A stretch of DNA of 64,000 nt from Macrostomum lignano (GCA_002269645.1 NIVC01002184.1:1-64000), one strand, 5' to 3'; shown: positions 2,186 to 59,214, counted from the first letter of the stretch. Made by a program: numbers and translations. Notes: generated by a model from the letters alone, not told the origin.

Positions 2186-4390
<2,205 letters not shown>

Positions 4391-7140
4391 TTGACAGCTA
4401 CATTGGGAGTTCAAGACAAATTACTTTAATTAGGCGGAAGAAAAAAAGGGAAAAAACATTGCGGGCGAAGTTGGTTCTATTTATTCAATTTGTGGTTAGT
4501 ATGGAGGCAAATCCGCGGCAATTCCTCGGGTATTCCTGGAGGACAATACAAATACAACAGTGCTGTGTCAGACCATAATTGGCAGCGAAAAAAACTTTTA
4601 TCAATTGTTTTGCAACTGTGGTTTGCTACAAATGATGAAAGTTACATTTAAAAGCTTACTGAGTTCATAAGAAGCACAATTTCCGCTTATTCAATCCTTT
4701 TATACATGAACGAATGCTCTTATTCTCAACAGATTATAGCTAGTTAGAGTAAGTTAAGTTATTCCATTTGGGAATTAGACTATCCACCTATTAACCTCTG
4801 AGATTCTGCAGAGTTCAATGTGCATTTAGACGGACTCCAGACGGATTTATGTAAGCTCATGATTTTTTAAATATAATTTCTGTGGAAATTCCATGGCAAT
4901 TCCATGGATTAGCCAAAATATACTATAGTAAATGTTCCAATTCTATCACATTCAGGATTGCAACGTTTTTTTCTATAGGCCCCTGTCGAATAATTGCACT
5001 GTATAAACGTGACTAATGCTGCACGTGAAAGACTCAGTGTAAAGCACCTGAGCTTAGACTCAGTGTAAAGCACCTGAGCTTACATGTGATACGTATTTAA
5101 TTAACCAGTTAATTCCTTACCCTCTAGGATCATTAAGAGTTGAAAATTGCTGAAACTATGCAGAATAAGTGTCTTAAAAAATTATCATTACTCTTAATCT
5201 GACTTTCATTTAGAAAAAAAATTGCGAGTACTTGGTTAGAGTGCAGGTGAAAGAATAGTGACTTTTTTTGCCTAAAACGAAACTCCAGAATAAAAGTTGT
5301 TTTGTATCTCCTGCCTGACCAAGTCGGTCCACGTGGTTGTACCTTGTATAGGTAAATCCACGGAAAAGCCGTGCAATTGGTGGGTTAGGATTGTACAGCG
5401 GCGGCCTTATGGCTGTCGCGTCTGCGAGTCTTCACCATAGCTACTACCTAGCACCAACGGTAGTTTTCAAGCTACGCATTTTTGTTTGCAGGTTGACTTG
5501 TAGCGATAAACAGAAGTCCACACTTTTATAACTTGTATTCGTTTGAGCTGTCAATTACAGCGATTTCAACGTACGCGAGATGTTGGCAAAGCTATTGTAC
5601 TAATGGAATTCACTGCGATTCTTTCGAATTTCTTCTACTTGCTCCGCTATGACTGCGCTCACTACTTTTAAGTAGGAGAATAAGAAGATTAAGTTCAAAA
5701 CATCTTCTAGACTTCCGACAACTTCGATCTGACCATTGGGGGCGGTAATCTGATCCTAATTTGGAAGGCAATTTTATGACGAGACAATCGGTTGTCTAAA
5801 GACTATTATTTCATTAACTGGCCTCTTTTAACTAGTCTTTTAACTACTCCTAATTACGGAAAATCAAGAAGATTGAAGTGGCTCTCTGTATAAATTTTGT
5901 TTATCTCAAATTTGGCTGCCTTGTTGAAGCAAATTTTCGTCATTACTTGCATTCATCTCTCTTTTACCGCGTCACAGTCCCAGACAGGCTGGCAGTGAAA
6001 TGAGCTGCTTGGTTGTATTAACAGCGCCTGTGGGCAAAAGGTGCGAATTGCGATGGTTTATAAAACGACCTACCGCTCCCTTCAAACCCCTGAGCTCTCG
6101 GCTCGGACGGGTTGGAGAGCAGCGCGATGTTGAACTCAACTCCGGTGTCGCCGCTTCCGCAGTACGCATTCTATGAGAGGCTGGTTTCCCTGCTGCAGCT
6201 GAAATGCTTGAGCAAGGGGCCGAACAGCTCGGTAGCCTGCGCAGTCTCCAGCATTATCGGTGTCTTCTGCGGCTGTCTGGTCCCTCTCGAGCAGGCAATT
6301 GCAGGGTTGGATAAAATTGCATGGAAATAGGGAGCAGCTTCGGGAGCACCAGAATGCATGATGCGGACAAAACTACATGCAAAAATAATTCAGAATTTCT
6401 CGGTTGATATTTGATATGCCAAAAAACTACTAGTAGTATTATGCATCGTGTTTAAAATTTTCTGATTCGGCTAAACACACAGCAGGTGAGAATTGCATAC
6501 AAATTGCTCACAGTACTGCTTACACATTCCCTATGATTTGGAAACAGCTCAAGAAATAAAAACCCGAGAGCCTTGCCCCGACCGTACACGTTATTTTTAC
6601 ACGTTTTTTGTAGTCAACAAAATTACTAAAAATTTAGAGGACTGTGTCTGTTGGAGTGCTCGTTTGCTCGATAACTTCTGAACAGCTGGCTGGTTCAAAC
6701 TTGACCTGGTGGGCTCTGTGCGGTGTAACAAACTCGGGCATGTTATTATAAGCTATTAAATTTCATCTGGGATCTTTAAATACCGGTATGTTTTAACTGA
6801 GTCAGACATCTGAGACTTCAAAATTTATTCAATGGACACTAGACAAAGGGGAGGCAGGGTGCTCAAAATTTGATCATTAAAATTCAAACTTGCTTACGAA
6901 GAACTTGCTAAATAACAGAGCTTATATTAGGGTCTACCTCACTGATCTTACATGTAAACTAATCACTAATGTCCATTTCACTTTTTAAATACATTGCATT
7001 GTTGCTAACTTGCTACACCTTTAAAGTACAAATTTGAAGGTTGACATCCATGTCATCAAGGGATACTGAAACTTGAGTGTATCCTGGAAAAAGATACCAC
7101 TTAATCTGGACACTATTACTACAGCCTGCCCATCTAGTCG

Positions 7141-7398
7141 GACACTATTACATGCACTTTGCTCCAATATAGCTGGCCCATCTATTCGGACACTATTACA
7201 TGCACTTTGCTCCAATATAGCTGGCCCATCTATTCAGACACTATTACATGCACTTTGCTCCAATATAGCTGGCCCATCTATTCGGACACTATTACATGCA
7301 CTTTGCTCCAATATAGCTGGCCCATCTATTCAGACACTATTACATGCACTTTGCTCCAATATAGCTGGCCCATCTATTCGGACACTATTACATGCACT
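7141..7398. repeat. 48-bp tandem repeat, ~5.4 copies
   Basis: Unit GACACTATTACATGCACTTTGCTCCAATATAGCTGGCCCATCTATTC(G/A). The G and A variants alternate, giving a 96-bp higher-order period. Confidence 0.95.
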
Positions 7399-8021
7399 TA
7401 ATATTTGTTAAATGATAAGAACTATGAACAGGTCGTATTTGAACTATTCATTCTGGGCTTTCTATTTCGCATGTATTGTAAGAGATTTTATTCTTATTTG
7501 ACACAAGAGTTTTTTCATTCTTTTAATGTGTTTGTATCGAAGCTGTACAGTACAAATAATAAAAAATAAAAGTTTCAAATATTTACATAGCGAAAAGCAA
7601 TAGAGATAGGCAGAAAGATAAATGAAAAACAAAAAATTGGAAAGAGCAAAAGCAAGCAAACAGAAAAGCAAAAATGCAAAAACTAAGTAAGAAAGAGAGC
7701 AAAAGGATAGACCGTTTGTAGGAAGAAAATTTTACAATGCTTTGCAAACACTGAAGCAAAATTTAGTGATCAGGGGCAGGTAAAATTTAGTTATTTACAG
7801 TGAGCTAAAAATTAAACGGACAATTGAAAAGTTTATAGAAAATTCGAAAAGGTTCATTAGTTAAGTAGTAATCTAAATAGTTAGATTATTTAAAATACAA
7901 ATTTTTAAAAGCTATTATACGTACTTTATGTGACTATGGTATGTAAAACTATTATACGCACACGTATATTATTATATCATTATAACCCGAAGAGTCTTAA
8001 AAACTGAAAAACTTACTCTTT

Positions 8022-8168
8022 TTATAGCGGCCGAAACGATTTTATCAACGATACGGGCCCGGCACGCCGATACGCATCCGTGTGAACCTGGTAGTGTGCC
8101 ATGGCAACCTCGGTGCTGTGGTTCAGGCGGTTACCAAGGACTTTCAGGTCGTGTCCTTCCAGTAGACC
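8022..8168 (-). CDS. YR gene terminal exon (box II His/Tyr)
   Basis: Acceptor TTATAG| then GLLEGHDLKVLGNRLNHSTEVAMAHYQVHTDAYRRAGPVSLIKSFRPL*, phase 0 with the preceding exon. NHS...HY fits the YR C-terminal His and nucleophile Tyr. Confidence 0.8.
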   Translation of the reverse strand, partial: GLLEGHDLKVLGNRLNHSTEVAMAHYQVHTDAYRRAGPVSLIKSFRPL

Positions 8169-11100
8169 CTATAATTTTTTATTGTTTCATTAAAGAAACT
8201 TATAAACTGTCGCCTTTTTTCTTCAAGATAAATAAGTGACCTGATGACGCTAAATGTGACTGAATTGCTGAATGAGTGAACAGGGGGATCGGCAGAGTGA
8301 ACGCATTGCTGAATGAGTGAACAGGTGATCGGGAGAGTGAACAGGTGATCGGGAGAGTGAACGCATTGCTGAATGAGTGAACAGGTGATCGGGAGAGTGA
8401 GTGCATTGCTGAATGAGTGAACAGGTGATCGGGAGAGTGAGTGCATTGCTGAATGAGTGAACAGGTGATCGGGAGAGTGAGTGCATTGCTGAATGAGTGA
8501 ACAGGTGATCGGGAGAGTGAACGCATTGCTGAATGAGTGAACAGGTGATCGGTAGAGTGAACGCTTTGCTGAATGAGTGAACAGGTGATCGGGAGAGTGA
8601 ACGCATTGCTGAATGAGTGAACAGGTGATCGGGAGAGTGAACGCTTTGCTGAATGAGTGAACAGGTGATCGGGAGAGTGAACGCATTGCTGAATGAGTGA
8701 ACAGGTGATCGGTAGAGTGAACAGGTGATCGGGAGAGTGAGTGCATTGCTGAATGAGTGAACAGGTGATCGGGAGAGTGAGTGCATTGCTGAATGAGTGA
8801 ACAGGTGATCGGGAGAGTGAGTGCATTGCTGAATGAGTGAATAGGTGATCGGGAGAGTGAACAGGTGATCGGGAGAGTGAGTGCATTGCTGAATGAGTGA
8901 ATAGGTGATCGGGAGAGTGAACAGGTGATCGGAGAGTGAGTGCATTGCTAAATGAGTGAATAGATGACTGGGAAAGTGAATGCATTGTTGAATGAGTGAA
9001 CCCTTATTGCCTAAGAATGTGACTAAGTCAGAGAATAGGCAAAATTATATTGTCGTTTAGACGAAAGTGTAGAAACTTACCCTAGTCTCGACAAATTTGC
9101 GGAAGTCTGTGTGTGTGACGCCACTGAGAATCGGGTTGAACTTTTCTCTGTAAGCCGCAAATAGTCTGCCGAAATCGCCATAGGGAATTCGAAGCAGAGG
9201 CTCCGTAGGGCCTTCTTTGACACGTTCTTCAACGACCCGCTGGAGCAGCTGGCGACACTCGCTCACGTTTATCTTGGCGGAGCCGTATTCGGAGTCCGTC
9301 TTGTGGCTTTCCACCTGAAGAAAGGGACGTTTTGCTGTCGTTACAATTTCGAAATAATGTAACTTAATTAGGTTTGTTACTGATATAGAACAGTTTGTCG
9401 TCATTAACAATGAATGGTTTTTTATTAGTTAGGTTGATGACTGAGTACACGGTTAGAGGTAAAGACAGTAGGCCTGAATAAAGTCAGTGGGAAGATGGCG
9501 GCAGGATGCTAATTGGTTTTCTGGTCATTCCTAACGGAAGTTTAGCACTTGATAAAAATTCTGGTCATTATTTCCACTCACCTTTAGTTCCTTGTCGGGA
9601 TCCTCGAGCCATCTGATGCCGTCCGCGACCGTACAATTAACAACGTCTTTAAGTTTGCTCTTAAAAGTCTAAAAATGTTTAATAAATACTTTAGTGAAAC
9701 CCTACGAGGACATCGCTAGCTCCAGTGTAGTGTACTTCTTTAAAAATAATTTTTTGCACTTTAATGCGAGTGATTGTAACATGTTAAATTTGCTTACCCT
9801 GCGGCGAGCCTCGTAAACTTTCTTTCTTCGAAGGTAGTATTTCATCCACAGGGTGCAGCACGCGCCGAAACTTTCTAAATCAAGTTGGAGCCCAGAAGCA
9901 GCAACGTCTTGCAACCTATAGGCTCGCAGAAACGTAGCCACCTTCTGCAGGACGCTGACTGTTTCCTTCAGCGGACCGAAGCTCTGAGCCGGCAAATATT
10001 CGTTGATCTAACAACAATTAGGTAATAAAAATAACTATTTGAATCACAAAACAAAAATGCACTGCTGAAAAACCACATAACCGTGATAGCTGGCTAGTTA
10101 TGACAAAATATATGAACAGGTGACTGGGACAGTGAATGAATTGGTGAATGAGTGAACAGGTGACTGGGACAGTGAATGAATTGGTGAATGAGTGAACAGG
10201 TGACTACGGGGTACTGCGGGCCGGCCACCGGCGGAGGGGAACCTAGGGAGGGCGAGGCTGCTGTTGGGCCGAAAGGAACCACAGCAACCCCTGCCCCCCA
10301 GGATACAACCCCCGCTGGTGAGCCACCCAGTATACCTGCTACAAGCGCGGCCGGGCCTTCGGGAACCGCCGCCACCAACTACGCCTCAAAGGTCAAGCTC
10401 CAACCGGCGGTCATCGTCTTCGGGGAAGAGCAGGACCTCACGGCCGACGAGCTCGACAGTGCCTGGTGCACCATCGATGCTGCGCTCATCGACCAGCTCC
10501 TGGCGGGCCGCCCTGTGAGCGTGGTCAAGTCTGCCAAGACCGACGGCTGCATCTTCATCTGGTGCAGCTCGGAGGAGAGCAGCCGCAATCTACGCGAGCT
10601 TCTGCCAAAGCTGAACTGGCCCAAGAAGCTCGGCAAGCTCGTCTTCGCTAGCGAGGGCGAACGACAAAAGACCCAGCGCTTTCGCGTCTGGATCCCGGCC
10701 GGCAGTGCCATTAAGTCCGGAGATCAGCTTAGGCAAAAATTGCTAAAGCTGCACCCCACCTTGAGGTCAACGGGCTCCTACACCACGCCACTTCCCGCAA
10801 GGAGAAGGGGGCTACGGTGATCCTAGGGCTCTCTGATGACTGGGCTAAGCGCTTTCCGCCTAAGCCACAATTCATATTGGTCTGACTCAGCTGACCATCC
10901 TCCGCTGCGAGGAGCGGAAAGCTGATGAAGCCAAGAATGCCAAGGCTTCCGAAACCGGAACTGGGGCCCGGGCTCCTCCGGCAAAGAAGCCGAGGCAAAC
11001 GGCCGATCCTATGCCCGGTAAGGCAGTTCGCGCTGCTGAAACCGGAAATCGCAATCGCAGACCCGCCAGGAGCACCCGGAGGTCCGGCCTGATCCAGCGC

Positions 11101-14100
11101 GCGCTGGACCAGGCCAAGAACCTTCGTGCGCATCGTGAGCGGGCCCGCGCTTCTCGCGCTCCACCCCAACAGCCAGAAGGCCAGACTCTAAGCGGGGAGG
11201 CTCCGACCGACTGGTTCGAGTCTGTGACTCACCAGGAGGCTGGCGCCACCCGCATCGACCTGACCGACGAGGCAAAGGGGACGGGCAGTGACAGCACCGA
11301 AGCACGCAGGGGAGGCGACGGTAACGTCCACGCTGGGCTCACGTCCGCGGAGGACTCCACAGCCACCCTAACTGCTGAGGACGCTGAAACTCCCATGGAG
11401 GTCTGCGGGTCACCCACCACTGAAAAGGAGGAGGATGACCTGCTCAACGATTCCCCAACTGCGTGATAATGATCAGCAACCAGGGAATCCATTGCCTGCA
11501 GATTAATCTGCAGCACTGCGTCGCAGCCTCGGTCAACCTTATGCGTTACGCCGAGCTCGACAAGCCGGGGCTCATCCTCGTCCAGGAACCCTGGACTCTC
11601 AGAGGTAAGCCTCAAAACGCCCCTGCTGGCTACAATTGTTTTTTTTTTACTTACCCTCGCGAGGCCAACCAGCCTCCCAGAGCTTGCATCTTTGCGAGCA
11701 AAACGCTCAGTGGTGGCTCAGATCGGACCTGTCCAACAGGGACATCTGCGTCATCCAATCCGAGGACCTTCTTCCTGGGAAGACCACCCTCATTGCCTCG
11801 GTTTACCTACCAGGCGATGCTGCGGTCGTCCCCAGAGCCCTCGCTACGCTGGTAGAGCTTTGCTCTGCCAAAAACTACGAGCTAATGGTTGCCGGCGACA
11901 TCAACGCCCACCACACTCACTGGGGCAGCACTGGCATTAATCAGAGAGGCGAAGACCTCCTAGCCTACGTTGCCTCTACGACCCTCGAGTTCTGCAACTC
12001 TGGGTCCACCCCTACCTTTGACAACGGACGGTGGTCGGAGGTGATCGACGCTACGCTCGCAACGCCCAGACTCTACCAGAGTATTGGGGCGTGGCGGGTG
12101 CTTCCAGTGTCCTCACTCTCGGATCACAAGTTCATCTCCTTCAACCTAATGGCCGCGCGTAGCGCAACTCGTGCTACGTGGAGACGGAACGCCAGAAATA
12201 CTGATTGGGAAACCTTCGGGCTCGCCCTGAATTAATTCCATCGGTCTCCTGGCCAACCATCCACGATCACGTCGTGCCGAGAGGCGGATGAGTGCGCGAC
12301 TGTTTTGAAAGAGACGCTAACCGCCGCCTTTGAGGCGTCCTGCCCTTTAAAAGCCTAGAAAGGGAAAAAATCGGCGCCGTGGTGGAATCCCGAGCTCGGC
12401 AACCTCCGTCGCAGGGCTAAGAGACTCCACCGCAGAGCAACTAAAACTAAGAGCCCTGCAGACCAGACCGCCTATCATGAAGCAATTCATGAGTTTAAAA
12501 GGCAGGTTAGGAATGCAAAGGCTCAAAAATGGCGACAATACTGTGAGGAGCTAGAGGGCTCACGCCCCACCTCCAGAGTTGTGAAAGCGCTCACGCTGGA
12601 CAAAATGTCTAAGCTCTCCTCGGTCAAACGCACCGACGGTACGTCCACGGACAACCCAGAGGAAACGCTTGATGTAATGCTCACTGCGTTTTTCCCCCAA
12701 CGAGCCAGCTAACCAGACCACTCCGGATCACTCGGAGGGAGGTCACGCGCTGGCTGCCTCTATCATCACGGAGGACCGCATCGTGAGAGCGGCAAATTCC
12801 TTCAAGCCTTTCAAAGCCCCAGGACCCGACGGCATTGTACCGGCCCTCCTAAGAGAGGCGGTTGAATGCCCAGGCTTCCTGCGCAAACTTTGCAGCCTTC
12901 TTCGGGCATGCATCACGCTTGGTTATGTCCCACAGGCATGGACCGAGGCAAAGGTGATCTTAATCCCTAAGCCAGGCCGCCCGGACTACCATTCTATCAA
13001 ATCCTTCAGACCGATCAGCTTGACCTCCTCCCTGGTCAAGCTGATGGAGAGACTGGTGCTTTGGCGCCTTCTCTCTGTTGAGCTGAAGAACAAACCTCTC
13101 AGCGAGAACCAGCACGCTTTTCGGGCGGGTCGCTCCACTGAAAGCGCGCTGCACGTCCTGGTCGATAAACTCGAGAAGGCCGTGCTTGGTAATGGCTTTG
13201 CTCTGGGGATCTTCCTGGACATCATTGGCGCCTTCGATAACGTCCTCTTTGAGGCGTTCCGAAGAGCTCTTTGTGAGAGGCAAACGCACTCACATCTCAC
13301 CAGATGGATCATGTACATGATCAGCCATCGCACGGCCACCGCCAGTCTGCTGGGCTACCAGAGGACGGTCCCCGTCTGCAAAGGTAGCCCGCAAGGTGGG
13401 GTGCTGTCTCCAGTTCTCTGGAATATGGTCATCAATGAGCTCCTCCGGGATGTTCGGCCTGACCCCATTCTGAAAGTTGGATATGCGGACGATGTCACCG
13501 CGGTGGCATCTGGTCCGTCCCCTGATACCCTCAGGGACCTTCTTCAGAACTTTATCTACGCCGCTGAGCAATGGGCGGAGCGCTGTGGTTTAAGGCTCTC
13601 TGAGACTAAGACCGCAGCGATCATGTTCACCAGCAGGACCAAGTGGCGGATTCGGCCGCTCACGCTTTACGGAAGGGAAATCCCCTTCTGCAAGTAGACT
13701 AAATGTCTGGGTATTACCCTGGACCACAGGCTGAACTGGTCACCCCACGTTCAAACAAAAGCCAAAAAGGCCTTCGCAGTCCTCGCGCAATTGCGCAGGG
13801 CTGTCGGCACCACCTGGGGGCTCACCCCCAAGCGCCTCTGGTGGATCTACACTGCAATGGTTAGGCCCGCTATCTCGTATGGCGGCCTGATCTGGGCTAG
13901 CGCCCTGCAGATAAAGACCTGTCTAGAGGCTCTCAGGAGAGCGCAAGGGCGCGCATGTCGCACGATCATGAGCGCCCCTCCGTCTGCTCCTTACGATGGC
14001 CTCAACGCCTTCCTTAACATTCCTCCGCTGGACATCTTTGTCCGCAGGGAAGCGGCTAAGACTGCCCGCCGTCTAGCTGACGCTGGCACTCGAATCCAGC

Positions 14101-17100
14101 CCCATAGGGCCATGGCTAAGCGCAAGCTTCTGCCCCACGCTGACCTCTGCCTCAAGGACTTGAGAGACAGCAGCGGGCTCCACGTCCTATCTGACGGCGA
14201 ACCCCGCACTCTCAATCTCTTTCAGCGCTACAAGGTCACCATCCCCTCTAGGGATGCTGCCAATGACCACTGGAATTTCCAGGAGGTCCATTGCTACACG
14301 GACGGATCCATCAAAGACGGTCGCGCCGGCTTTGGGGTCTGCATCATCATCAACGGCCGCGTAATTGCCACGCATGCCCAGCACACTGGTAGACTCTCCA
14401 CAGTCTTCCAGAACGAAGTCCTGGCCATCAGCTCCTGAGCTGCAGAGCTGAACGCCAAGGTTACGAGAGGAAAGACTATTGTCATCCACTCCGACAGCCA
14501 AGCGGCCTTACAGGCCCTTTGCCACACCACAACGAACTCCCGGACAGTCGCCGACTGCGCCCGGCAGCTCAACCTCCTGGCCAGAAGCAATACTGTCAGG
14601 CTGAAGTGGATCCCAGGGCACGCAGGGTTTCCGGGGAACGAGCTGGCAGACACCCTCGCCAAGAGGGGCGGCTCTGGCTCTTTCTTCGGCCCTGCCCCCC
14701 TGGTCCCTATGCCCTTGACAGTCATCAATCGTCAGATCGACGACTGGGCTGACTCCCTCCACAGGGACAGATGGGCGGGCACCCAAAACTGCCGGCAATC
14801 TCGTGCCGCGGTTCCTTGCCCGTCTCGCAGGCTCAGAAACATCCTTCTGAACCAGAATCGGAAGGATATTCGAGCCCTTGTCATGACCCTTACCGGCCAT
14901 GGCTACCTCGCCAGGCACTGCTTCCTCCGAGGCGACCTCGAGAGCGAAATTTGCCCCTTTTGCGAGTGCGACAATGAAGATGCTCAGCACTTTGTTTGTC
15001 ACTGCCCCTTCTTTAACAGAGACCGGCTACGCTACCTCGGGCCGAACCCGTCCATTGACGAGGTCTGCCAGCCCGACAGCATCCCACGGCTCATCCAGTT
15101 CCTTCGGGCGACTAGACGAGCCAGTTTCTTCCCCACGGAAGATCACGCTGCAGGACGGACCGGCGGACCACCCTGACCGGCCCCACGCCTCTGCCTGTCT
15201 GCGGGCCTTCAGGGGCTGGCGGAATGGGCGACCCTCGCCTCCCCGCTGTGTCTACGGACCACCCTGCAGCTAAGTCAAGTAAGTCAAGAACAGGTGACTG
15301 GGACAGTGAATGAATTGGTGAATGAGTGAACAGGTGACTGGGACAGTGAATGAATTGCAGAATGAGTGAACTGGTGACTGGGACAGTGAATGAATTGTGA
15401 ATGAGTGAACAGGTGACTGGGACAGTGAATGAATTGGTGAATGAGTGAACAGGTGACTGGGACAGTGAATGAATTGGTGAATGAGTGAACTGGTGACTGG
15501 GACAGTGAATGAATTGCAGAATGAGTGAACTGGTGACTGGGACAGTGAATGAATTGGTGAATGAGTGAACAGGTGACTGGGACAGTGAATGAATTGGTGA
15601 ATGAGTGAACAGGTGACTGGGACAGTGAATGAATTGGTGAATGAGTGAACAGGTGACTGGGACAGTGAATGAATTGGTGAATGAGTGAACAGGTGACTGG
15701 GACAGTGAATGAATTGGTGAATGAGTGAACAGGTGACGAAGATTGCAAAATAAATATGGAGGAAATTTGCATATTGAATCGGTATGCTGCTCACTTTTTC
15801 ACGAGCGTCCTGTCGGATGAGTTCGTTGAAGGTTGCCGATCCTGTCGCGTCCATCACGCGGACTAAGCAGCGGTCCATCTTGCCGATGGTGCTTTTGGCA
15901 AGAGTTCCGCCGGACGCACCACCAAGATGTTTCTGTGAAGGAAATCAGAAGATAAATATTTTTGCTACGAGCGTAGATATCGTAAATTATCACTTTTTCA
16001 ATTATCAATTGTCATGTTTAATTGCGAGGGGTGCATAAATTCCCTAAACTAAAATACTAAAATACTAAAATGAAATATATTTATAGTATATTACTGATTC
16101 AAGAAACAAGCGATTTAAAACGATTTTCATGAGATTTGCACTATTCGGTCAATTTTTTTCTCGGACCATACATATCTCCTTGTGGGTCGCCATAACTCCG
16201 AAAACTAAAATAGCATTATACATTGCTAGAACTTTCGTTGCTATGAAATTTCGGGTTTGTGATGCCCCCCACACTCTTAATTTTGTTTCGAAATTGTTTA
16301 TTTAGAAGGGGATTATATAGGCCCTAATCGTCGAAAGAATCTTAATAATTCAAAGGGCATTGAAAAAAAGTTTTTTTCTCACCAGAAAGTCGGCCATTTC
16401 AGGATTAGAATCTTTCATGCCGTCGAGTTTTGCCTTTTGGTCGGCCAAAACGGTCTTTATGTCCAAGACCTCAGGCTCCGGCTCCGACTTCTGAACCTCA
16501 GTCTCCGGCTTCTGATGGTGGCGCGCCTTGTGTTTTCGCAGGCTGTCTTTGCCGCCTTTTACGCACTTGCTGCACTCCGGGCAGACAACTGAATTCCTGT
16601 ACGCATTGAGGTGATAAAGTTAAGGCAATTTAGTTAACTATAAACTATCTAATGAAGTCTAGAATTAGGCCCTATGTCAATTCACAGCACAACTTGTAAT
16701 CTCCTGTAAACCTAGAGTAACATAGGGCCTAACAGCTGACTCAGCAAATTGCCTCACACCCACTTGCTGAAGCATTCAATAGACCCGACCGTGCGGACTC
16801 CTCTATATCAATTTTCAATACTTGGCTTTCTACCTCCTCTTCTGGAGCAAATTATAAAGCTCAATAACTTTCAGTGAATAAAATTTTCAGCAGAGAAGCA
16901 ACTAATGTCCAGAGAAAGTTACGAAAACATTTTTGACAAACTTGACATGAAATAATTTGTGATTTGAATTGGCCTAGTAAGTATAGTGAACTACTAATCC
17001 TAAAAAAACGATTTCTAATCGATTGATCACTAATTTCTTTTTAAAGCTTAATAGCTTGCTTAGGAAGAGACATCATCAGACACATGAAAAAACTCGCCAA

Positions 17101-20100
17101 ACAGATAATTAGTATGGACGGGAAAGACTTGGATTTTTTATCTAAAAACAGAAACAAGATAAATTAATACAGATGTACTCACTCGTCATTTAACTGGCTT
17201 GAAGAGATGGCGTTCGCATCTCTGATGAGCTGCTTCATCTGAGCCACGACAGCCTCCTGGGTCTTATTATACTTGCCCATCAGAAACTTGATGTCACGTT
17301 GGTGGCTCTGTTGGATGTGCTGCGTAATTCGCGAGTTGCGAATTACGCACTTAGTGCTGAACGCACAGAAAAGCGTTCGACCAGCCGATGTTGCTGCTGC
17401 CGCCGCTGGTGGTGCTGTTGATGTTGCTTCTTCTTCTTCTTCTTCTTCTTCTTCTACTTCAGCGCTCGCATTACCGGCGCGGCGGCGCCGAAATTTGCGG
17501 GGGCCATCGCCCCATGCTCCGAAGGAGCGAGAGACATTTTCCCGGGTTCCGGAGGAGCTCCTCGTGATCGTTCCCGACCAGGGCCATCCGTCGAGCGTCT
17601 CCCCGGTGGCAGTGAAGTAGCGCATGGGCGCTATCGTCGAGTTCTCCGCAATCCGGGCACTGCGGGTTATCGATCATACCGAATCGGTGCTGGATCTCGG
17701 CGCAGAGCATCGTCATGCCTGCGCGAAGCTGGTACACCGCCGTTTGCTCCCGCCGGTCTCTCGCTTTGAAGTCCGGCCAGGGTTGCGGCAGGGTTTCTTT
17801 CTCCAGTGTCCGGCGATCGCGGCGAATGGCTGCTTTTGCGGCGTTGAAAGAGATGGGCACATCCTCTTGGGGCAAGCCTCTTGCCATGCCGGCCGCGCGG
17901 TCCGCCGCTTCATTAAGGCTGATGCCGCAGTGGGCTGGCACCCAGATTAGTTCTATGTCGGCCGTTTCGCTGATGTCTAGCATGTGGCGCCAGCAGTCCG
18001 TACCGGTCTTAGTCGCCTGGGCTAGTGGTCCGGCCCCTAGTGCTGTCAATGACGATAATGAGTCGCTACATAGGCGAATCTTCTTTTCGCTGGGGCTGCA
18101 GTTGTTTCTAATAAAAACCAGTGCTTCGCGGATGGCTATCATTTCTGCGTCAAAGGAGCTACAGGTGATTCCGGCCGGGGCCTTGCGCACGTGACTCGCC
18201 AAGGTCGTGCAGATTATAGCGGCGCTGCCGCCGGGTCCGGTGCCGTCCGCCACCGATCCGTCTGTCCACGCGCAGATGTCGGCCTCAGGCAGTGACTGCA
18301 GGAACTCCGTTGCCGCCGTGCTCCGGGACTCCTGGAGGTCCGTGCGGCGGCATCGGGCCGAGATGTCCAGGCGGATGTTAATGTCCCGTGCGTCGCACTC
18401 CCACGGCGGGATGCCGGGGCTTACCGGGTCGCCTCTTTTGTGGGAATCCAAAATGGCGACCGACGGCAGTTCCAGTGCCGCCCTCCTCCAGCAGTTCCGG
18501 AAGGGGCGGGTGGCGTCCCGCGGGTCGATGAGGTTCAGCGGGTTCGACTGTGCTTCGTCGTCGGCGCCGCCGTCTCCCTGGGTGCGGCTGTGGTCGCGTG
18601 CCAGGGCTTCGTAGGTACGGTTTTTCAGTCTAGGCCTGGTGTTCCGCAAGGCTACTTGTCCCGCCGAGACACTCGGGTCGAGTCTTAGAACTCTTTCCCT
18701 TAGGCGTGCCGCCCGCCCTCTCGGACGCGATGAATGAGAGCGGTGTAAGCCCGGCCAGCTGTAGGACTGAGCGGATGTTGGTCGGCATGATACATCCCGT
18801 AATCAGTCTCGCGCACGCGTTCTGCTGCTGTTCAATAACTCGTCTGGTGGAGGGGGCGGCGCCGCATAGCCAGGTACCTGCGGCGTACTCGGCCACAGCG
18901 CGGACGGTACTGATGTAGGCTGTTCGGATCGTTTGTAGGTCAGCTCCGGTGCTCCTGCCGGCCATCGCTGCGAGCGGTCGGCGTCTGGCGCACATCTTGG
19001 CGCGGACTGTCGCGGCGTGCTGTGCGAAATTGAGTTGACCGTCTAGGCGAACACCGAGGTAGTTCGGGGCGGGGTCGAAGGATATTGGCTTATCATCGAT
19101 GAGCATATTGAGTCTCTTTTTGCCGTTTGACTCCTTTGCGTCCAGCGTGAAAGTGCCGTACACGCTCTTTTCCACGCTGAGCTCCACTTTCCATTCCTTG
19201 CACCACTGTGAGACGGCGTTCAGCGCGGGTTGCAGCTTCTCTCCACATGTGTCCAGAGACCTGTCAGAGGTCAGGAGGGCGCTGTCGTCGGCATACAGTT
19301 TGATGGAAACACCCGCGGCGGCGTCTAGCACCGCATCGACCAGATCGTTGACGTAGACTAACCACAGTGTGGGGGAGAGCACCGACCCCTGTGGTAGTCC
19401 TTCCCGGAAGATGCGTTCTTTGCTGGTGCAGTCGCCGACGCGAACGCGGGCTCTTCGGTCTGACAGGAAGGCCTTGATCCACCGGATGACATCGGCTGGC
19501 ACTCCCAAGTCTCGCAGCTTCGAGTAGAGAGCCGCCCTCCAGACTCTGTCGTAGGCGCGGCTAAAATCAAGCAGGCAGCACTGACCTGATGTGCGGGGTG
19601 TCCTCGAGCTTGTCGAAAATCTCCTGGGAGATGTCGGCAATGAGCTCCTCAGTGGAACGCCCCCGTCGGAAGCCCGCCTGGCTGGCGGTCAGCCGACCCG
19701 AGGCCTCCAGGGCGTAGCGGAGACGCTGGAGGACCATGCGCTCTGCGAGCTTAGCCACGCAGCTGGTGTTGCTGCTGCCGCCGCTGGTGGTGCTGTTGAT
19801 GTTGCTGCTGCCGCCGCTGGTGGTGCTGTTGATGTTGCTGCTGCCGCCGCTGGTGGTGCTGTTGATGTTGCTGCTGCCGCCGCTGGTGGTGCTGTTGATG
19901 TTGCTGCTGCCGCCGCTGGTGGTGCTGTTGATGCTGCTGCTGCCGCTGGTGGTGGTGCTGCTGCTGTCATTGTTGATGCTGCTGCTTGGCACTCAACAGC
20001 GATCAATTTCAAATTTTCCGAAGCCACTGGCGAGCTGCTTTGAGAAGGCTTCCAGTGAATAGCCGTTGGCGAAAAACCACTGCTTTGCTGTTGGCAGCAA

Positions 20101-20180
20101 GCTACAGTTGAACTGTTTTCCACTGGCAATTCACTGCCACTAAGTAGATCCTCAAGAAAACTATATTCTGTATCACCCAT
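8022..20180 (-). CDS. Spliced zinc-finger + tyrosine recombinase (Crypton-like/DNA_BRE_C) gene, interrupted by a LINE in exon 1
   Basis: Exons 20180-19767+17388-17183, 16596-16383, 15932-15795, 10007-9798, 9668-9582, 9314-9081 and 8168-8022. All have GT-AG boundaries and compatible phases, giving ~549 aa. Motifs: CPECSKC..RKHKARHH (C2H2), VESHKTDSEYGSAKI, THTDFRKFVET and LGNRLNHSTEVAMAHY. Confidence 0.8.
8265..9000. repeat. 40-bp minisatellite in YR intron 6
   Basis: Unit GAATGAGTGAACAGGTGATCGGGAGAGTGA(AC/GT)GCATTGCT, about 17 copies, with some 20-bp half-units. Confidence 0.95.
9081..9314 (-). CDS. YR gene catalytic exon (HKT lysine and xxxRK box)
   Basis: Acceptor TTCTTCAG|, 78 codons VESHKTDSEYG...THTDFRKFVETR, donor |GTAAGT. 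Confidence 0.85.
10115..10205. repeat. 40-bp minisatellite, left part (split by a LINE)
   Basis: Unit GAATGAGTGAACAGGTGACTGGGACAGTGAATGAATTGGT. The array continues at 15288-15736. Confidence 0.9.
10206..15287 (+). mobile_element. Near-full-length non-LTR retrotransposon (LOA/Lian-like; ORF1 + APE-RT-RNaseH-CCHC), degenerate
   Basis: ORF1 pieces at 10206-11466. ORF2 from ~11470: LQINLQH, LVQEPW, GDINAHH, SDH (APE); PGPDGI, QGGVLSP, YADD (RT); YTDGS...STVFQNEVLAI (RNase H); CPFC...HFVCHCP. Stops at 12233, 12356, 12710, 13695 and 14436, plus a poly-T frameshift at ~11640. Tail TAAGTCAAG. 12-bp TSD GAACAGGTGACT at 10194-10205 and 15288-15299. Confidence 0.95.
15288..15736. repeat. 40-bp minisatellite, right part
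   Basis: About 11 copies of the same unit as 10115-10205. Confidence 0.95.
15795..15932 (-). CDS. YR gene exon 3 (core-binding-domain start)
   Basis: TTCACAG|KHLGGASGGTLAKSTIGKMDRCLVRVMDATGSATFNELIRQDAREK|GTGAGC, 46 codons, phase 0/0. Confidence 0.75.
16383..16596 (-). CDS. YR gene exon 2 (C2H2 zinc finger)
   Basis: ACAG|g NSVVCPECSKCVKGGKDSLRKHKARHHQKPE...EMADFL|GTGAG. The entry phase matches the exon 1 donor GA|GTGAGT at 17183. Confidence 0.8.
17428..19766 (-). mobile_element. 5'-truncated non-LTR retrotransposon (I-group/Ingi-like; RT-RNaseH-CCHC)
   Basis: Begins mid-RT (CVAKLAERMV, QAGFRRGRST), then LDFSRAYD, GLPQGSVLSP, YADD; RNase H WTDGS, SSFDAE, CSDSLS, WVPAHCGISLNEAAD; and CPDC..HALLHC. 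(GAA)n tail at 17428-17454. The flanks 17389-17427 and 19767-19805 are identical (39 bp, but within a 33-bp repeat). Confidence 0.92.
19767..19975 (-). repeat. 33-bp coding tandem repeat (TSTAPPAAAAA)n in YR exon 1
   Basis: GCAACATCAACAGCACCACCAGCGGCGGCAGCA occurs about 5-6 times in frame with MGDTEYSFLEDLL. Confidence 0.9.
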
Positions 20181-20862: not shown

Positions 20863-21465
20863 TTATCTTCATCTAACTGATTCAGCCGCCTCTGTTAATC
20901 TCGCCAGCTCAGAGTCTCCTATACTTAGAACAGAGTCAGCTCTAAGTCAGCTTTTTCACTCGAACACACAGATATGGTCTTGGGGCCGCTATAACCCCTT
21001 TATCTATGACGGGAGCTGAGGTCTTAGTCTGTTTTCGGGCCTTTCTCTAAAGAGAAATATGAAATTAGAAGTTTGAGTAGTGCCACCTTGTCGATCCGTA
21101 CGTTGCCTTTTTTATTATTCTAATGTTTCTTTTTTGCTTATCTAGCAAAATTTCATGTTTATTATATTACTTTCTCTTTGTTCAAGTAGTAGCCTGGCTA
21201 GATAATTCATTCGAAATTCTCGAAGCCGTAAGAAATTGGATAAGAATTTTAGTCCCATAACATAGGTATGTAGTGAAACTACAACTTAACTTTGATTTGA
21301 ATTGCATATATTTTATGAGTTAAGGACGAGAGGGCTTGGGGCGAGAAACTTAACTGCGAGAAAGAACTGTAAAAGGAAATTAGTCTATGGTAATTTATGA
21401 CAAACTGAGTTGCAAATAAAAAGTACAACAAAATACCCATAGGTAATTTTGTCCGCCAGAGCCAC

Positions 21466-22912
21466 ATGCAATTTTGTCCGAGCTCATGTGATTGCCTCCC
21501 CCCACTGCTGGTCTGCCTCGGTCTGCTTGGCAACGGCCTGGTCGCGTACGTGACTCTGGCTCGGCTGCGCCCGCTGACTCGGCAGAATGTCTACTTTGGA
21601 TGCATCGCTGTGGTGGACTCGATCGCTGTCACTGAAATTGGCGTTGTGCAGCTCTTCCTGAGCAAAGGCCTGCCCTGGCTTAGCGGCGGCAGGCTCGGCT
21701 TCATCCTGCTTAACCAGGGAGACTGGGGCTGCCGGAGCCAATCCTACCTGCTGGGCCTGTGCCAGCTGCTGCCGGCCGCGATGCTTCTAGCCATGGTTGT
21801 CGACCGCACCCTGTCCATGCTGGCCCCGTTCCGGTTCCGCACCCTGGGGCCAGGTGTAGCGCTGCGCGTAGCTTTGCTGACTGCGGCCACTTCCGCTGTT
21901 CTGGCTGCTCCGATCCTGTTTTTAACTTCTCTGGTTGGTTGCGTGACCCCTCAAAGACCTCTAAAAATAATTTAGGTCCAATGGCATTGGAGTACAAAGG
22001 ATTTCGTACAAAAGGAGAAGGGGGCGCTTCATAAGACCTAAATTTCACACCACCTAAAGCACAAAACTTCGCATCGCCTAAACTTCATATCGTCTAAATT
22101 TCACACTGAATGTGAAGGAGAGAAGCACAGATTTTAGGCGATATGAAATTTAGGCGATGTGAAGTATGATGGTTTTAGGCGTTGTGAAATTTGGGTCTTA
22201 TGAAAACGTCCCAGAAGAAGAGCCACTACAACTTGTGCGATTTATGTGAAGATAGAGTCGAATTTTATCTCATATTGTGAACTTTTAATCTGCTCAGACA
22301 AACTGTTGAAACTTTAAACTTTTTTTTAGAATTCTTATTCTTTTATCGAAAATTTATTTATCGAAACTTTCGCTCCCACCGCAGGTGACGTTCTCTGGCA
22401 GCTCTGGCAATTTCTTCATCTCGTGCTACCTGACCAACCAGCGAGTTGAAGCTCTGCTCTACTGGAACTTGCTGTGCAGTCCGCCTACCCTGGCTCTGCT
22501 GGCCATCCTGCTGACCAACTGTCTATTGTTGTTCTGCGTCGCTCGTGTGGCCAAGGAGCGAAGGCGCCATCTGCAAGGTGGATGCGGCAGCGGCGGAGTC
22601 AGCGACGGCCAGAGCCTCAGCGGTGCCACAGCTGTACTGGCTCTGTCTGTGCTGATGCTGCTGTGCGACTTTCCCCTGATCGCCGTGTACTGGACACTCA
22701 GGTTCCTGCCAGCCCAGACCGATCCCACCGTCATGCATGCCCTATCTGAGTCGATCTCAGCCCTGATGGCTCTGCATCTGCTCAGCCAGGCGGGAAACTT
22801 GCCGGTGATGCTGCACCGCAATCGCCGGTTCAGACGATGCTTCCTAGAACTGGTGCGACTGAGATCGGAGCGCCCGACCAGTTGGGAGATGCGAGCCGGC
22901 ATTGCCGAGTGA
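21466..22912 (+). CDS. Orphan rhodopsin-class (peptide-receptor-like) GPCR, 2 exons
   Basis: Exons 21466-21933 and 22385-22912, phase 0 (CTG|GT..CAG|GTG). TM1 LGLLGN, TM2 YFGCIAVVD, extracellular Cys, TM3 AMVVDRT, TM6 LLCDFP, TM7 NLPVM, helix 8 RRFRRCF. The N-terminus may be incomplete. Confidence 0.85.
22021..22212. mobile_element. MITE in the GPCR intron (Merlin/hAT-like)
   Basis: ~38-bp TIRs GGG(G/A)CG..TCATAAGACC(T/C)AAATTTCACA, with internal CCTAAA(T/C)TTCA subrepeats in mirror orientation. 8-bp flanks AGGAGAAG / AGAAGAAG (1 mismatch). Confidence 0.75.
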
Positions 22913-25375: not shown

Positions 25376-28300
25376 TCATTTTCTTGCGGCGAGAAGCGAG
25401 CTAAGGAATCCCTTTTTCAGCTTCCCGCCCCGCAGAAACTCGTGCTCCAGCAGCTCCTCTGCGGATCTTCTCTTCCTGCAGTCCTTGGCGGTGCAGCGGC
25501 TGTAGAAATCCCTCAGCTCTGCGGACCGGCCGTCCGGCAGGGCGGGGGCGCCCCTCCTGTCGATCAGCTGGGCCATTTCTAACAGGCTTTTAGCGTTCGC
25601 AAATGGCCTTCCACCAGACGCCATCTGGAAGATCAAGCAGCCGAACGCCCAGATGTCCGACTCTCTGCTGTACTGCACGCTGTCCGATTCTCCCGCTCCG
25701 AGCAGCTCTGGCGCCATGAAGTTCAGAGTACCTTTGGGTGACTTAGTGGAGGCTGAGATGTGGCTGACTGACTGCTCCAGCTTGATTGACAAGCCGAAGT
25801 CGATCAGCTTGATTTGCGTGTTGTCAGAACACACAATTATGTTCAAGCAGTTGATGTCTCTGTGGATCACGGGCGGCTGCCGGCTGTGCAGGTAGAGCAG
25901 CGCGCGGCAGATCTGCGAGCGGTCGGTCAGTGAGCAGTCCTCACTCATGGGAACATGGAACAGGAGCATCAAGGATGCACAGTGCTCACCTGCTCGCTGA
26001 AGTCTCGAATAGTCAGCTCGTCTAGCGGCTTGTTGTCGATAAACCTCTCCAAGCTTCGGCCGTCCAGCAGCTCCATGAACACAACGACTGTGGCGAGTTC
26101 TGGCTGAGCGATATGCAAGAACCTGACGATGTTGGGATGCCGCAGTCGGCACAGGTTTCTCTCGCTCTCGATAGCTCTGTGGATCTCTGTGCTCACAGAG
26201 GTTTGGTCATCACCGAGCTGCACAGGCAGTCTGAGAGTCTTGGCAGCGCACGTGACGCCCGTGTCAGTTCGAACTTCGTGGACTTCACCGAAGCCTCCGC
26301 GGCCGATGAGGCGAATGGCATTCCAGCGCTTCAGGAACGGCGGGCCTTCGGGACTGAGGGGATGTGAGTTGAGACAATGAGGGATAATTTTCATGCTGTA
26401 GCTGTGTGCTTTAGCTGTGTGTGCTGTAGCTGTGTGCTTTAGCTGTGTGCTGTAGCTGTGTGTGTTGCAGCTGTGTGTACTGTAGCTGTGTGTTGCAGTT
26501 GTGTGTTGCAGTTGTGTGTTACTGTAGCTGTGTGTTGTAGCTGTGTGTGCTGTAGCTGTGTGCTTTAGCTGTGTGCTGTAGCTGTGTGTGTTGCAGCTGT
26601 GTGTGCTGTAGCTGTGTGTTGCAGTTGTGTGTTACTGTAGCTGTGTGTTGTAGCTGTGTGTGCTGTAGCTGTGTGCTTTAGCTGTGTGCTGTAGCTGTGT
26701 GTGTTGCAGCTGTGTGTACTGTAGCTGTGTGTTGCAGTTGTGTGTTGCAGTTGTGTGTTACTGTAGCTGTGTGTTGTAGCTGTGTGTGCTGTAGCTGTGT
26801 GTGCTGAAGGAACTCACGGCAGTGCCAGAGGCTCGTCGAAGTAAATCTTGCCGTCATACCTAAATAGGCAGTGCGGAGTCTGAAGTCAGGAGAATTCTGG
26901 TGGGAGCCCATATTGTGCTTCATTCAATTTATTCTATTTGTAATCATTTTGCTTTAACTGTCTAGCAGGTGAAACGCCAAATTAATATTCAATTGACAAT
27001 ATGCAGTCAAGCTGCACTGCAAACTCCCTCAATGCAGCTCAGTCAGTCCCTACTGCCCATTTAAACTAATGTTTTGCATAATTTTTATCAATAATAAATC
27101 AAAGTCAGACATTCTCTGTCGCCATGGAAACTCACCCACGCAGCAGCTCAGCCAGTTCGCTCCTTCCCTGCTGTGTGATCAAATCCAGCGCAGTCCTGCC
27201 ATATATGTTCTTCAGGCTCCAATCCGCCCCTGAGTCCAGCAGAACCCGACTGACTGCGGCGGCGGTGGCGGGGGGCGCAAATTTGGCTGCCTCCATGAGG
27301 GGCGTGGATTCCAACTCACTCCTGGCATTGGCGGAGGCTCCGGCAGCCAGCAGAGCGGAGGCTGCGGTAGAATTGCCAGCCATCGCTGCATGGTGCAGGC
27401 AACTGACAGCCCCTATATCCGCACAGGTGGGGTCACCCAGCTGCACAAGCTGCTCCCACAGTGCCTCATCACCGCACGAGCTGTTCTGAGCTGCCCACAT
27501 CAATGCGGTGAGACCCGCTCTGTGAAGCAGGTCGCAGCTGCCGCGGGTCGCCGCTCGCCGCAGCCCCGCCGAGTCGCCTGCCTCGGCCAGCCGCTGCAGT
27601 TCCTGTCGATCCGCCTCCTCCTGCAAAGGCGAGCGGGAAATTTGAGCACAGCTGCTCAGCTGCAGCCGCATCGGCACCAGTCGTGTCTCCCTGCAATAGC
27701 AAAAATGAAAAGCGAATTCGCAATTTTCCCAAATCCGACAACTGCGATCGCCAATAGAAATTTTAAGTTGTACGACATAATTTTCATCATAAGTTTAGTG
27801 AACAGAAATTCCTAATTATCTGAGCTGCTCGCAGATGGAGTTTCCAAGAGGACTGCAGCAGCTCTGCAACAATCAGCATTGGCGAGATCGCATCCGACTT
27901 GAGTTTCCCTCCATCTCACAATGTCTCACTAAGCACTCACGCACAGCCTCGCAGTTCTCCATCTGCAGCTCAACCCACATACTCTCACTGCAAACCAAGG
28001 ACCTACAGCATCCATTCTCATTTGAGATCAACCGGCACCCCATTGGCTGGGAGGCAGCCAGCCAATCACAGCTCTTGCCCATCAGGCAGTCAGCCAGAGA
28101 CAAGCTCAGCTGACTGGCTCTGATTGGCTGGCCGGAGACTGCAGCTCTGGCCACCCCAGCTGAATGCTGCAAAACTTGATGGACACAGCAGCGAACTGCT
28201 CACTCACCGCTCGATGTAGCTGGCCAGCTCTGAGTGGCCGCTGAGCCTCGCCGATTCCGACGCCGTCCGACCCTCGGGATTCTTCAGTCCGAGCAGCCGC

Positions 28301-29046
28301 GACCTCTTCGAGTTTCCGTGCTTGTCGCACTCATTGAACCTATACTGCCTGAGCAGGTGCAGCAGGTGCTTGGCGCATTTCCAGCTTCCAGTCCGCGCCG
28401 CCTCCATTAGCGGAGTGGCGCCGTTGTCGTTCCGCAGCCACTTCGCATCGAACGACAGCAGCGTCAGCACCCGCAGGTGGTCCCGCCGGGCTGCCAGGTG
28501 CGCAGCCGTGTCGCCGTTCGCGTCAGCTGCCCTTGGGTTCGCGCCCAGCTCAAATAAGTACAAGATGCACTTTTCAGTCTGCACGGGAGTCTCAGAAGCG
28601 TCGGCAACATGCATGAGGACGGTCCGACGAACTTCATCAGCGCTAGTGACCAGCTGGCGCGTTGCCAGCCGCCGCACCTGGCCGAAGTCACCTTGAATAA
28701 CGTCGTGGGCGAGAGTCCGGAGATCAGCTGCTGAGTTTCCGACGCTTGCCCGGTTGCTGGGGTCCGGCTGAGTGAGTTCCTGCAACTGCAATTGAGGCAC
28801 ACAAGCTGCACATTCAAACATGTGAGTGAGTTCCTGCAACTGCAATTGAGGCACACAAGCTGCACATTCAAACATATGAGTGAGTTCCTGCAACTGCAAT
28901 TGAGGCACACAAGCTGCACATTCAAACATATGAGTGAGTTCCTGCAACTGCAATCGAGCCTACAAATGTTCAATATGCTTCAATTTGCTCACTTTAATTT
29001 TACTCACTCTTTCGTCAGGAAATGGTGTTGGCGATTGCTCTGTCAT
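25376..29046 (-). CDS. Ankyrin-repeat + STE11/MAP3K-like protein kinase
   Basis: Exons 29046-29008, 28779-28208, 27690-27136, 26859-26818, 26395-25990 and 25912-25376 join in frame. ANK motifs GDTAAHLAA, GATPLMEAA, GLTALMWAA, ESTPLMEAA, GRTALDL. Kinase motifs GRGGFG, AAKT, HPNIV, HRDINCLN, DFG, GTLNFMAPE, SDIWAFG. The exon choice between 28208 and 27690 is the least certain. Confidence 0.8.
26396..26805. repeat. Compound (GCTGTGTGT/GTA)-type microsatellite filling a kinase-gene intron
   Basis: About 13-15 bp units such as GCTGTGTGTGCTGTA, with larger block repeats. Confidence 0.9.
28769..28952. repeat. 54-bp tandem repeat overlapping a splice acceptor
   Basis: TGAGTGAGTTCCTGCAACTGCAAT starts at 28769, 28823, 28877 and 28931. 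Confidence 0.95.
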
Positions 29047-58499: not shown

Positions 58500-58794
58500 A
58501 TTAGTAGTAGTAGTAGTAGTAAAAGTAGTTGTAGTAGTAGTAGTTGTAGTAGTAGTAGTTGTAGTAGTAGTAGTAAAAGTAGTTGTAGTAGTAGTAGTAG
58601 TAGTAGTAGTAGTTGTAGTAGTAGTTGTAGTAGTAGTAGTTGTAGTAGTAGTAGTAAAAGTAGTTGTAGTAGTAGTTGTGGTAGTAGTAGTAAAAGTAGT
58701 TGTAGTAGTAGTAGTAGTAGTAGTAGTAGTTGTAGTAGTAGTTGTAGTAGTAGTAGTTGTAGTAGTAGTAGTAAAAGTAGTTGTAGTAGTAGTT

Positions 58795-58827
<33 letters not shown>

Positions 58828-59013: not shown

Positions 59014-59049
<36 letters not shown>

Positions 59050-59143: not shown

Positions 59144-59214
59144 TAATACAGTAGGGCAAGGGACGTATTTGTAAGTCAACTGTTTTTCGATCACATACCT
59201 ACCTAGATAAATAC

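Follow-up and report, generated by a model that had tools for sequence, protein, structure and literature searches.

Cryptons are rare, poorly bounded transposons of eukaryotes that encode a tyrosine recombinase (YR) only; as YR-only eukaryotic DNA elements, they were reportedly described by Goodwin in 2003. Four groups, F, S, A, and I, are distinguished (Kojima & Jurka 2011, PMC3212892). Their members carry a YR gene alone, have neither terminal inverted repeats nor long terminal repeats (LTRs), and end in direct repeats of 4 to 6 bp that are taken to be the substrates of recombination (PMC3212892). Here, we describe a gene of the flatworm Macrostomum lignano, found in a 64,000-nucleotide stretch of its genome (GCA_002269645.1, NIVC01002184.1:1-64000; hereafter the window, meaning this whole stretch), that encodes a pair of zinc fingers (ZnFs) followed by a YR-type two-domain module. 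Its relatives include elements present in nearly identical copies in the same genome, whereas the window copy itself lacks part of the catalytic domain and is interrupted in its first exon.

The gene lies on the minus strand, from 20180 to 8022, and a base-by-base check of its structure gave seven exons and six introns (Table 1). All six introns run from GT to AG; intron 1 is in phase 2, with the donor GA|GTGAGT at the end of exon 1b, and introns 2 to 6 are in phase 0, the donor context of exon 4 being AGG|GTAAGC. As exon 1 is split by a long interspersed nuclear element (LINE), the length of the spliced open reading frame (ORF) depends on how much duplicated target is taken out along with it: removal of 39 bp yields an ORF of 549 amino acids and removal of 6 bp one of 560, both in frame. 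An initial annotation, made from the sequence alone, had proposed seven minus-strand exons with GT-AG boundaries and agreeing phases; every exon and intron was verified, and its figure of 549 amino acids was reproduced. The motifs it had named (HKT, THTDFRK, NHSTEVAMAHY, and two Cys/His fingers) occur in the spliced protein as described, and the order of a zinc-finger pair and then a YR-type two-domain module is likewise supported. Exons have a GC content of 46 to 56%, versus 28 to 37% for introns. Finger 1, encoded by exon 1b (FCAFSTKCVIRNSRITQHIQQSH), has the form C-x5-C-x9-H-x4-H, which is a CHHC-like spacing.

Independent evidence for the gene comes from its homologues. A profile was built from eight foreign homologues only, with the window protein left out, and was run against all six reading frames of the 64-kb window from end to end. 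All seven exons were matched on one strand and in collinear order, with per-exon E values between 1e-15 and 0.08, and the spliced product scored 204 bits (E=4e-64) against it. Intron positions tell the same story. The homologous locus L007 (a Logan contig from run SRR29257315) has introns at ...EFK|IAEHKT... and ...IETN|AKLK... (approximate bounds, 1268/2400 and 2631/3228), which correspond in both position and phase to window introns 5 (...ELK|VESHKT...) and 6 (...VETR|GLLE...). A further homologue, L008 (ENA ERZ27271215), has an intron at about 1325, the position of window intron 5. Because intron positions and phases are common to the window, L007, and L008, the splicing model is supported across organisms. 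The signal is far beyond chance, and the seven-exon gene is genuine.

Relatives of the gene are few. When 1.84 billion representative proteins were searched exhaustively with phmmer, only eight were returned, with E values from 3e-23 to 2e-4, while a word-indexed homology search recovered no relative with the 409-residue core and P0002 only with the family alignment. Two of the eight relative clusters contain five M. lignano "hypothetical proteins," which make up family 1 (PAA91811, PAA87763, and PAA93120) and family 2 (PAA84835 and PAA66829); the remaining relatives come from short metagenome or Logan contigs. P0007 and P0008, the proteins of L007 and L008, have been cut off by gene callers at a GTAAG donor. 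The window protein is 21 to 28% identical to every relative and has the longest branch in a neighbor-joining tree. As nothing in a collection of 15 billion proteins reaches 50% identity with the window product, the window gene is unannotated. The ZnF-YR family is small and undescribed: nothing on it is present in the literature searched, nor did searches on Macrostomum turn up anything relevant to ZnF-YR elements or Cryptons.

The family layout, as seen in the nine-sequence alignment A2, consists of finger 1, finger 2 (a C2H2 finger), a helical domain, and a series of catalytic motifs in the order GNAxRPDV ... xHKT ... TxTxYRKxxET ... RLxHxxxVAxQSY. Family-wide, finger 1 has the CHHC-like spacing C-x5/12-H/C-x9-H-x3/4-C/H (A2 columns 1 to 30; window 17340-17410), and it gives weak matches to U11-48K in Pfam (E=0.09), to GTSF1 in the PDB (E=0.04), and to R2 N-terminal fingers (E=0.025). 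CHHC fingers of the U11-48K/GTSF1 type are usually linked to RNA binding, which makes them an odd companion for a recombinase; here, both fingers presumably help the protein to recognize DNA.

Assignment of the C-terminal module to the YRs draws on structure more than on sequence. An integrase match in HHpred- or InterPro-style searches had been expected from the initial annotation and did not materialize: searches of Pfam, NCBIfam, and PDB sequences with the window protein and the eight relatives found no integrase and no DUF3504/PF12012, and the phmmer and profile searches of the PDB found no recombinase, only C2H2 fingers, GTSF1, and R2 N-terminal fingers. The only integrase match at the sequence level is that of the window C terminus to PHROG phrog_1 "integrase" (E=2e-4). 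For comparison with described YRs, alignments were rebuilt from Additional file 4 of Kojima & Jurka 2011 and compared over the catalytic domain with hhalign. The family gave E values of at least 0.1 throughout, against the prokaryotic, DIRS, CryptonF, CryptonI, CryptonA, and CryptonS profiles, whereas in the control, the Crypton, DIRS, and prokaryotic YR groups detect one another at 1e-4 to 1e-17. Within the weak CryptonI and CryptonA alignments, Arg-II, His-III/Trp, and Tyr are in register and a family Thr lies under His-II; the weak CryptonI alignment also places Arg-I and Lys in register.

Prediction from the window protein as a single sequence with AlphaFold was unusable (predicted local distance difference test [pLDDT], 39), while an AF2 model of the family member P0002, built on alignment A2, reached a pLDDT of 81. 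Foldseek matched the P0002 model to archaeal Xer (probability, 0.99), Cre (0.97), and poxvirus topoisomerase IB (0.66) in the PDB and to six integrase or Tyr-recombinase proteins in BFVD (0.95 to 1.0). As the model includes the flexible finger and linker parts, we treat these matches as moderate evidence. The secondary-structure elements of the model follow the order known from YR catalytic domains: αA, αB, and an Arg at a helix N terminus come first, and then a β-hairpin bearing Lys, further helices, Arg-II, His, and Tyr, the last two spaced His-x8-Tyr. The family catalytic set comprises Arg-I (GNAxRPD), Lys (HKT), Arg-II (Thr-x-x-Arg, YRK), His, and Tyr. It is not the complete YR set, as Thr occupies the His-II position family-wide, and the window copy is also without Arg-I. 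We conclude from the predicted structure that the family probably has a YR fold, with Thr for His-II, and that it lies far outside the described clades. For the window protein, the YR-type domain proposed at the outset holds as far as the fold predicted for its family and the Lys, Arg-II, His, and Tyr motifs are concerned; the domain is incomplete, however, with about 57 profile positions absent.

These absent positions (245 to 302, covering αA, αB, and the Arg-I motif GNAxRPD) fall at the junction of exons 4 and 5, so that their place is exactly that of intron 4. Window residues KSKLKDV align to NAxRPDV of the family, and Arg-I is gone. A six-frame profile search for the αA-αB-Arg-I segment across the entire window did not find it. 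The gap is most simply explained if a single phase-0 exon was deleted between exons 4 and 5; such whole-exon loss is favored because reading through intron 4 adds no profile score and its GC content is intron-like. Two other explanations were considered and rejected. Intron 4 does not look like decayed coding sequence, as a read-through of similar length contributes nothing to the score and its 31% GC is that of an intron, and an alternative donor and acceptor, which would extend exon 4 by 31 amino acids and leave an intron of roughly 47 nucleotides, still provides no Arg. The window gene also stands apart in its six introns, versus two in L007, which is four more than the intron-bearing relatives have. 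No second copy of the gene is present in the window, and a search for element ends around it (inverted repeats, k-mers, and flank duplication) gave chance-level matches only, such as 6309-6323 versus 21465-21479.

The LINE in exon 1 encodes RVT_1 (E=8e-24) and RNase_H (E=7e-11) domains and ends in a (GAA)n tail at 17428-17460. It sits inside a 33-bp coding repeat, flanked by a target duplication of 6 or 39 bp, and introduces an in-frame stop at about 19692, some 160 codons from the native ATG. The frame of exon 1b is open for 164 codons back into the 3' end of the LINE (17182-17673) and includes an in-frame ATG at 17625, from which a transcript starting in the LINE could yield both zinc fingers and the remaining protein. 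The LINE in intron 3, on the plus strand at about 10188-15280, is near full length with several frameshifts and has matches to APE, reverse transcriptase (RT), and RNase H domains, plus a subthreshold match to zf-RVT. It must have landed in a 40-bp minisatellite array, because that minisatellite is found on both sides of it (10113-10205 and 15288-15737). The two RTs between 8022 and 20180 belong to independent APE-type LINE insertions, one in the sense orientation in exon 1 and one antisense to the gene in intron 3, and related elements contain no RT, which bears out the earlier argument against a DIRS origin. Related 40-bp minisatellites also fill intron 6 (8264-9001), and the 40-bp minisatellites give rise to long but spurious ORFs (SLIHQFIHCPSHLFTHSP...) in each of the three frames of the minus strand.

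In contrast to the window locus, the M. lignano relatives have clear boundaries. Their elements are low in copy number and measure 7.5 to 10.5 kb overall. Family 1 has three copies of 7.5 to 8.4 kb that are 99.2 to 99.4% identical and share identical sharp boundaries, although their contexts are unrelated: one is intergenic and two are intronic, one within a UQ_con gene and one within a TRAM_LAG1_CLN8 gene. The family 1 ORF is intact in each copy, at 726 to 750 codons, and the copies vary in the count of a 444/451-bp tandem repeat. Five to seven such units, located at L002:10448-13634 and at the equivalent places in L003 and L005, reproduce the first part of the recombinase ORF, ATG included. 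Family 2 has two copies, about 99% identical, with unrelated flanks. One long ZnF-YR ORF is present in the L002 and in the L004 element, with no RT and no second long ORF, and the conserved core is free of introns in the element ORFs and in several metagenomic homologues.

The ends of these elements could be read directly. Family 1 elements begin with CCAT(A/C)CTTTCCAAATCGTTACAG and end with CCTGTAATGGAAAAGCC, flanked by direct repeats of CCAT, CCCAT, or GCCCCAT, and TTACAG/CTGTAA repeats lie just interior to the ends. When the two ends are joined, the result, TGGAAAAG-CCCCATA-CTTTCCA, consists of inverted arms around a 7-bp spacer. Family 2 elements begin with CCCCTATAGGCACGTTTATGACAG and end with CGTCATAAACGTGCCCC, with direct repeats of CCCC and TGCCCC, and their joined ends form perfect 14-bp inverted arms around the spacer CCTATA. 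An empty site is also available, as the L006 copy is inserted in another copy of the LINE found in window intron 3. The window LINE reads ...CTTC TGCCCC ACGCTG... at the corresponding place, a paralogous empty site, and the filled site reads ...cttc tgcccc|TATAGG...element...AAACG|tgcccc acgctg... (L006:7152-7190 and 17686-17730). Hence, the 6-bp TGCCCC occurs once at the empty site of the window and twice around the L006 insertion. Judged from their sequences, the relatives are Crypton-like, YR-only DNA elements, and the entire family seems to represent a new and strongly divergent form of Crypton-type YR transposon.

Most likely, then, these elements would move in the Crypton manner. The anatomy of the elements is consistent with their excision as a circle, in which the joined ends would form the core site of the recombinase, with inverted arms around a 6- to 7-bp overlap. 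Recombination between this circle and a short target of matching sequence, of the CCAT type or TGCCCC, would then leave a direct repeat of 4 to 7 bp on each side. The predicted circle junctions are ...GGAAAAGCC/CCATAC... and ...AAACGTGCCCC/TATAGGCACG.... The same anatomy suggests catalysis by the encoded YR-type protein and a putative part for its fingers. The features from which this scheme is drawn were observed directly, namely the element ends, their flanking direct repeats, and a single empty site.

How should the window copy be read? Because Arg-I and two core helices are lost and the first exon is broken by a LINE, we favor, with a probability of about 0.55, an old, fast-evolving, intron-rich ZnF-YR paralogue that is now a non-mobile and catalytically dead remnant. 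Its death may have been recent, since the other exons are still open. A number of observations weigh against this reading. About 1.65 kb of exon coding sequence runs without a stop or frameshift, and none of the zinc ligands has been lost, nor have Lys, Arg-II, His, and Tyr; a pseudogene that died long ago would not be expected to look like this, and the pattern fits continuing selection. Possibly, the LINE arrived only recently or is confined to one haplotype, having hit a low-complexity stretch that the protein can spare, and translation of a ZnF-YR product could begin at the ATG in its tail. Domesticated Crypton genes, too, have typically lost catalytic residues (PMC3212892). As for the YR fold itself, the model comes from only nine sequences, and the Foldseek matches have E values of only 0.006 to 0.07 and template modeling (TM) scores of 0.26 to 0.52. 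These last values, together with the lack of any significant match to Pfam, NCBIfam, the PDB, Crypton, DIRS, or prokaryotic YRs, groups which do detect one another, would suit an unrelated helical C-terminal domain with spurious motif likeness and spurious Foldseek matches. We consider such a domain very unlikely, as the top-ranked matches in both libraries, at probabilities above 0.6, are all YRs, integrases, or type IB topoisomerases (unnamed BFVD entries aside), the order of helices and strands and the His-x8-Tyr spacing are canonical, the catalytic residues are in register in the weak full-length Crypton alignments, the ends of the elements are built exactly as YR core sites are, with short crossover repeats, and there is the PHROG integrase match.

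Both the open exons and the in-frame ATG of the LINE tail would also fit a domesticated host gene, a possible though less favored account in which a ZnF-YR transposase was captured long ago, gained extra introns, lost Arg-I, and now serves in non-catalytic DNA or chromatin binding, a role for which the DUF3504 genes ZMYM2-4, QRICH1, and KIAA1958 are a precedent, the LINE being tolerated or allele specific. Under this account, the zinc ligands and most motifs have been kept despite 21 to 28% identity, and the loss of catalytic residues is the usual fate of Crypton-derived genes (PMC3212892); the four additional introns, the strong compositional contrast between exons and introns, the clean removal of the missing segment in phase 0 with the frame undisturbed, and the lack of element ends around the locus all agree with it. 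However, the ORF from the native ATG is cut off by the LINE, the gene was not found in the protein sets searched, and Lys, Arg-II, His, and Tyr are kept, though a pure DNA binder would not need them. Exaptation figures as well in a broader proposal that strikes us as unlikely, namely that the ZnF-YR proteins are an undescribed superfamily of eukaryotic YR DNA transposons, still active in M. lignano, from which the intron-rich window gene without Arg-I was exapted; such a superfamily would be no closer in sequence to Crypton F, S, A, and I or to DIRS than to phage integrases, and it would have compact core sites (14-bp arms and an overlap of 6 to 7 bp). Least probable of all, and already disfavored, is the view that the window locus holds an autonomous Crypton-like element that is still live, or a functional site-specific recombinase. 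The family is mobile in the M. lignano genome, and the window copy does have Tyr, His, Arg-II, and Lys, but Arg-I and the two core helices are gone, exon 1 is broken, the window has no second copy, and neither terminal inverted arms nor direct repeats were found. The interpretation in the initial annotation, a Crypton-like element or a domesticated YR, is therefore partly supported: the relatives are Crypton-like, whereas function or mobility at this locus is unlikely with the Arg-I segment gone and the LINE break. Similarly, the copies, ends, direct repeats, and empty sites by which it would have the element defined are there for the relatives, but no ends were found at the window locus.

The surroundings of the gene contain several other genes (Table 1), including an ABCA-like ORF at 31785-34889 that is 100% identical to M. 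lignano BOX15_Mlig028078g1. Coding or near-coding minisatellites occur at 7128-7399, 58490-59194, 59567-60205, 61825-62621, and 63273-63935. A LINE 3' fragment is present at 2423-3069; its zinc knuckle, CPFCG...HHVTFCPYF, resembles that of the intron 3 LINE (14709-15176).

Table 1. Coordinates of the gene, its relatives' elements, and neighboring genes (positions are those of the window unless another locus is given)
Feature	Position	Strand	Homologue profile positions (E value)	Description
Exon 1a	19767..20180	-		ATG at 20180; acidic low-complexity N terminus
Exon 1a repeat	within 19767..20180	-		33-bp coding repeat, six times, unit AAATSTAPPAA
LINE insertion in exon 1	17428..19766	-		5'-truncated non-LTR element, in the gene's own orientation
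Exon 1b	17182..17427	-	1-45 (1e-5)	Last 33-bp repeat unit (target-duplication copy) and zinc finger 1
Exon 2	16383..16596	-	58-123	C2H2 zinc finger 2 (CPECSKCVKGGKDSLRKHKARHH), then charged linker
Exon 3	15795..15932	-	125-173	Helical N-terminal (core-binding-like) domain begins
Intron 3	10008..15794	-		5.8 kb; holds plus-strand LINE within minisatellite
Exon 4	9798..10007	-	186-244 (7e-9)	Remaining N-terminal helical domain and interdomain helix; end ...YEARRR|GTAAGC
Intron 4	9669..9797	-		129 nucleotides, 31% GC, two in-frame stops
Exon 5	9582..9668	-	303-333	Sequence KSKLKDVVNCTVADGIRWLEDPDKELK; Leu/Lys in place of family Arg-Pro
Exon 6	9081..9314	-	319-403 (1e-15)	β-Hairpin Lys (VESHKT) to Arg-II motif (THTDFRKFVETR)
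Exon 7	8022..8168	-	406-435	His-III and nucleophile Tyr (LNHSTEVAMAHY, His-x8-Tyr), C terminus, TAA stop at 8024-8022
Family 1 copy	L002:8481-16903
Family 1 copy	L003:7692-15640
Family 1 copy	L005:4399-11902
Family 2 copy	L004:7203-16586
Family 2 copy	L006:7187-17691			10.5 kb
Empty site (paralogous)	14098..14177	+		In intron 3 LINE
G-protein-coupled receptor-like gene	21466-22912	+
Kinase with ankyrin repeats	25376-28953	-
ABCA-type transporter	31782-36643	-		Annotated Mlig028078g1
Sugar-transporter-like gene	53071-56568	+

According to the literature searched, no Crypton has been reconstituted biochemically. The divergent ZnF-YR lineage occurs in a transgenesis-ready flatworm and offers intact ORFs, 99% identical copies, defined ends, a core site, and an empty site, features that make the mechanism of excision and integration directly testable and the protein a candidate for a new site-specific recombinase. 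The window copy would provide an evolutionary snapshot, with one catalytic Arg lost and the rest kept, of a first step toward either domestication or decay.

Among known systems, Cryptons are the nearest. Like them, the M. lignano relatives have a single YR-type protein, no RT, and no LTRs, they are low in copy number, and their direct repeats of 4 to 7 bp match one copy at the empty site. An extra DNA-binding module fused to the YR has a parallel in CryptonF, which carries GCR1_C, and introns are possible in both. The family differs in that it joins none of the described clades (F, S, A, and I), with E values of at least 0.1 to every Crypton group, in that every member has Thr in place of the H-x-x-R box His, and in its N-terminal pair of a CHHC-like and a C2H2 finger, which is not described in the literature searched; the window copy, moreover, shows no ends and lacks Arg-I. 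The DUF3504 genes (ZMYM2/3/4, QRICH1, KCTD1, KIAA1958, and WOC) resemble the window gene in having a YR-derived domain, introns, zinc fingers, and a partial loss of catalytic residues. In contrast to these, the window protein has no PF12012 match and keeps Lys, Arg-II, His, and Tyr, with only the Arg-I segment missing, and a LINE splits its gene. With DIRS, Ngaro, and VIPER, the elements share the use of a eukaryotic YR for integration, but those retroelements have RT and RNase H in their own unit together with characteristic terminal repeats, whereas the ZnF-YR elements have no RT. Finally, the Xer, Cre, and lambda Int YRs have in common with the family the predicted two-domain fold, inverted arms around an overlap of 6 to 8 bp, and the His-Tyr spacing, while the ZnF-YR proteins are set apart from them by a eukaryotic host, N-terminal zinc-finger extensions, Thr for His-II, and the lack of any match at the sequence level.

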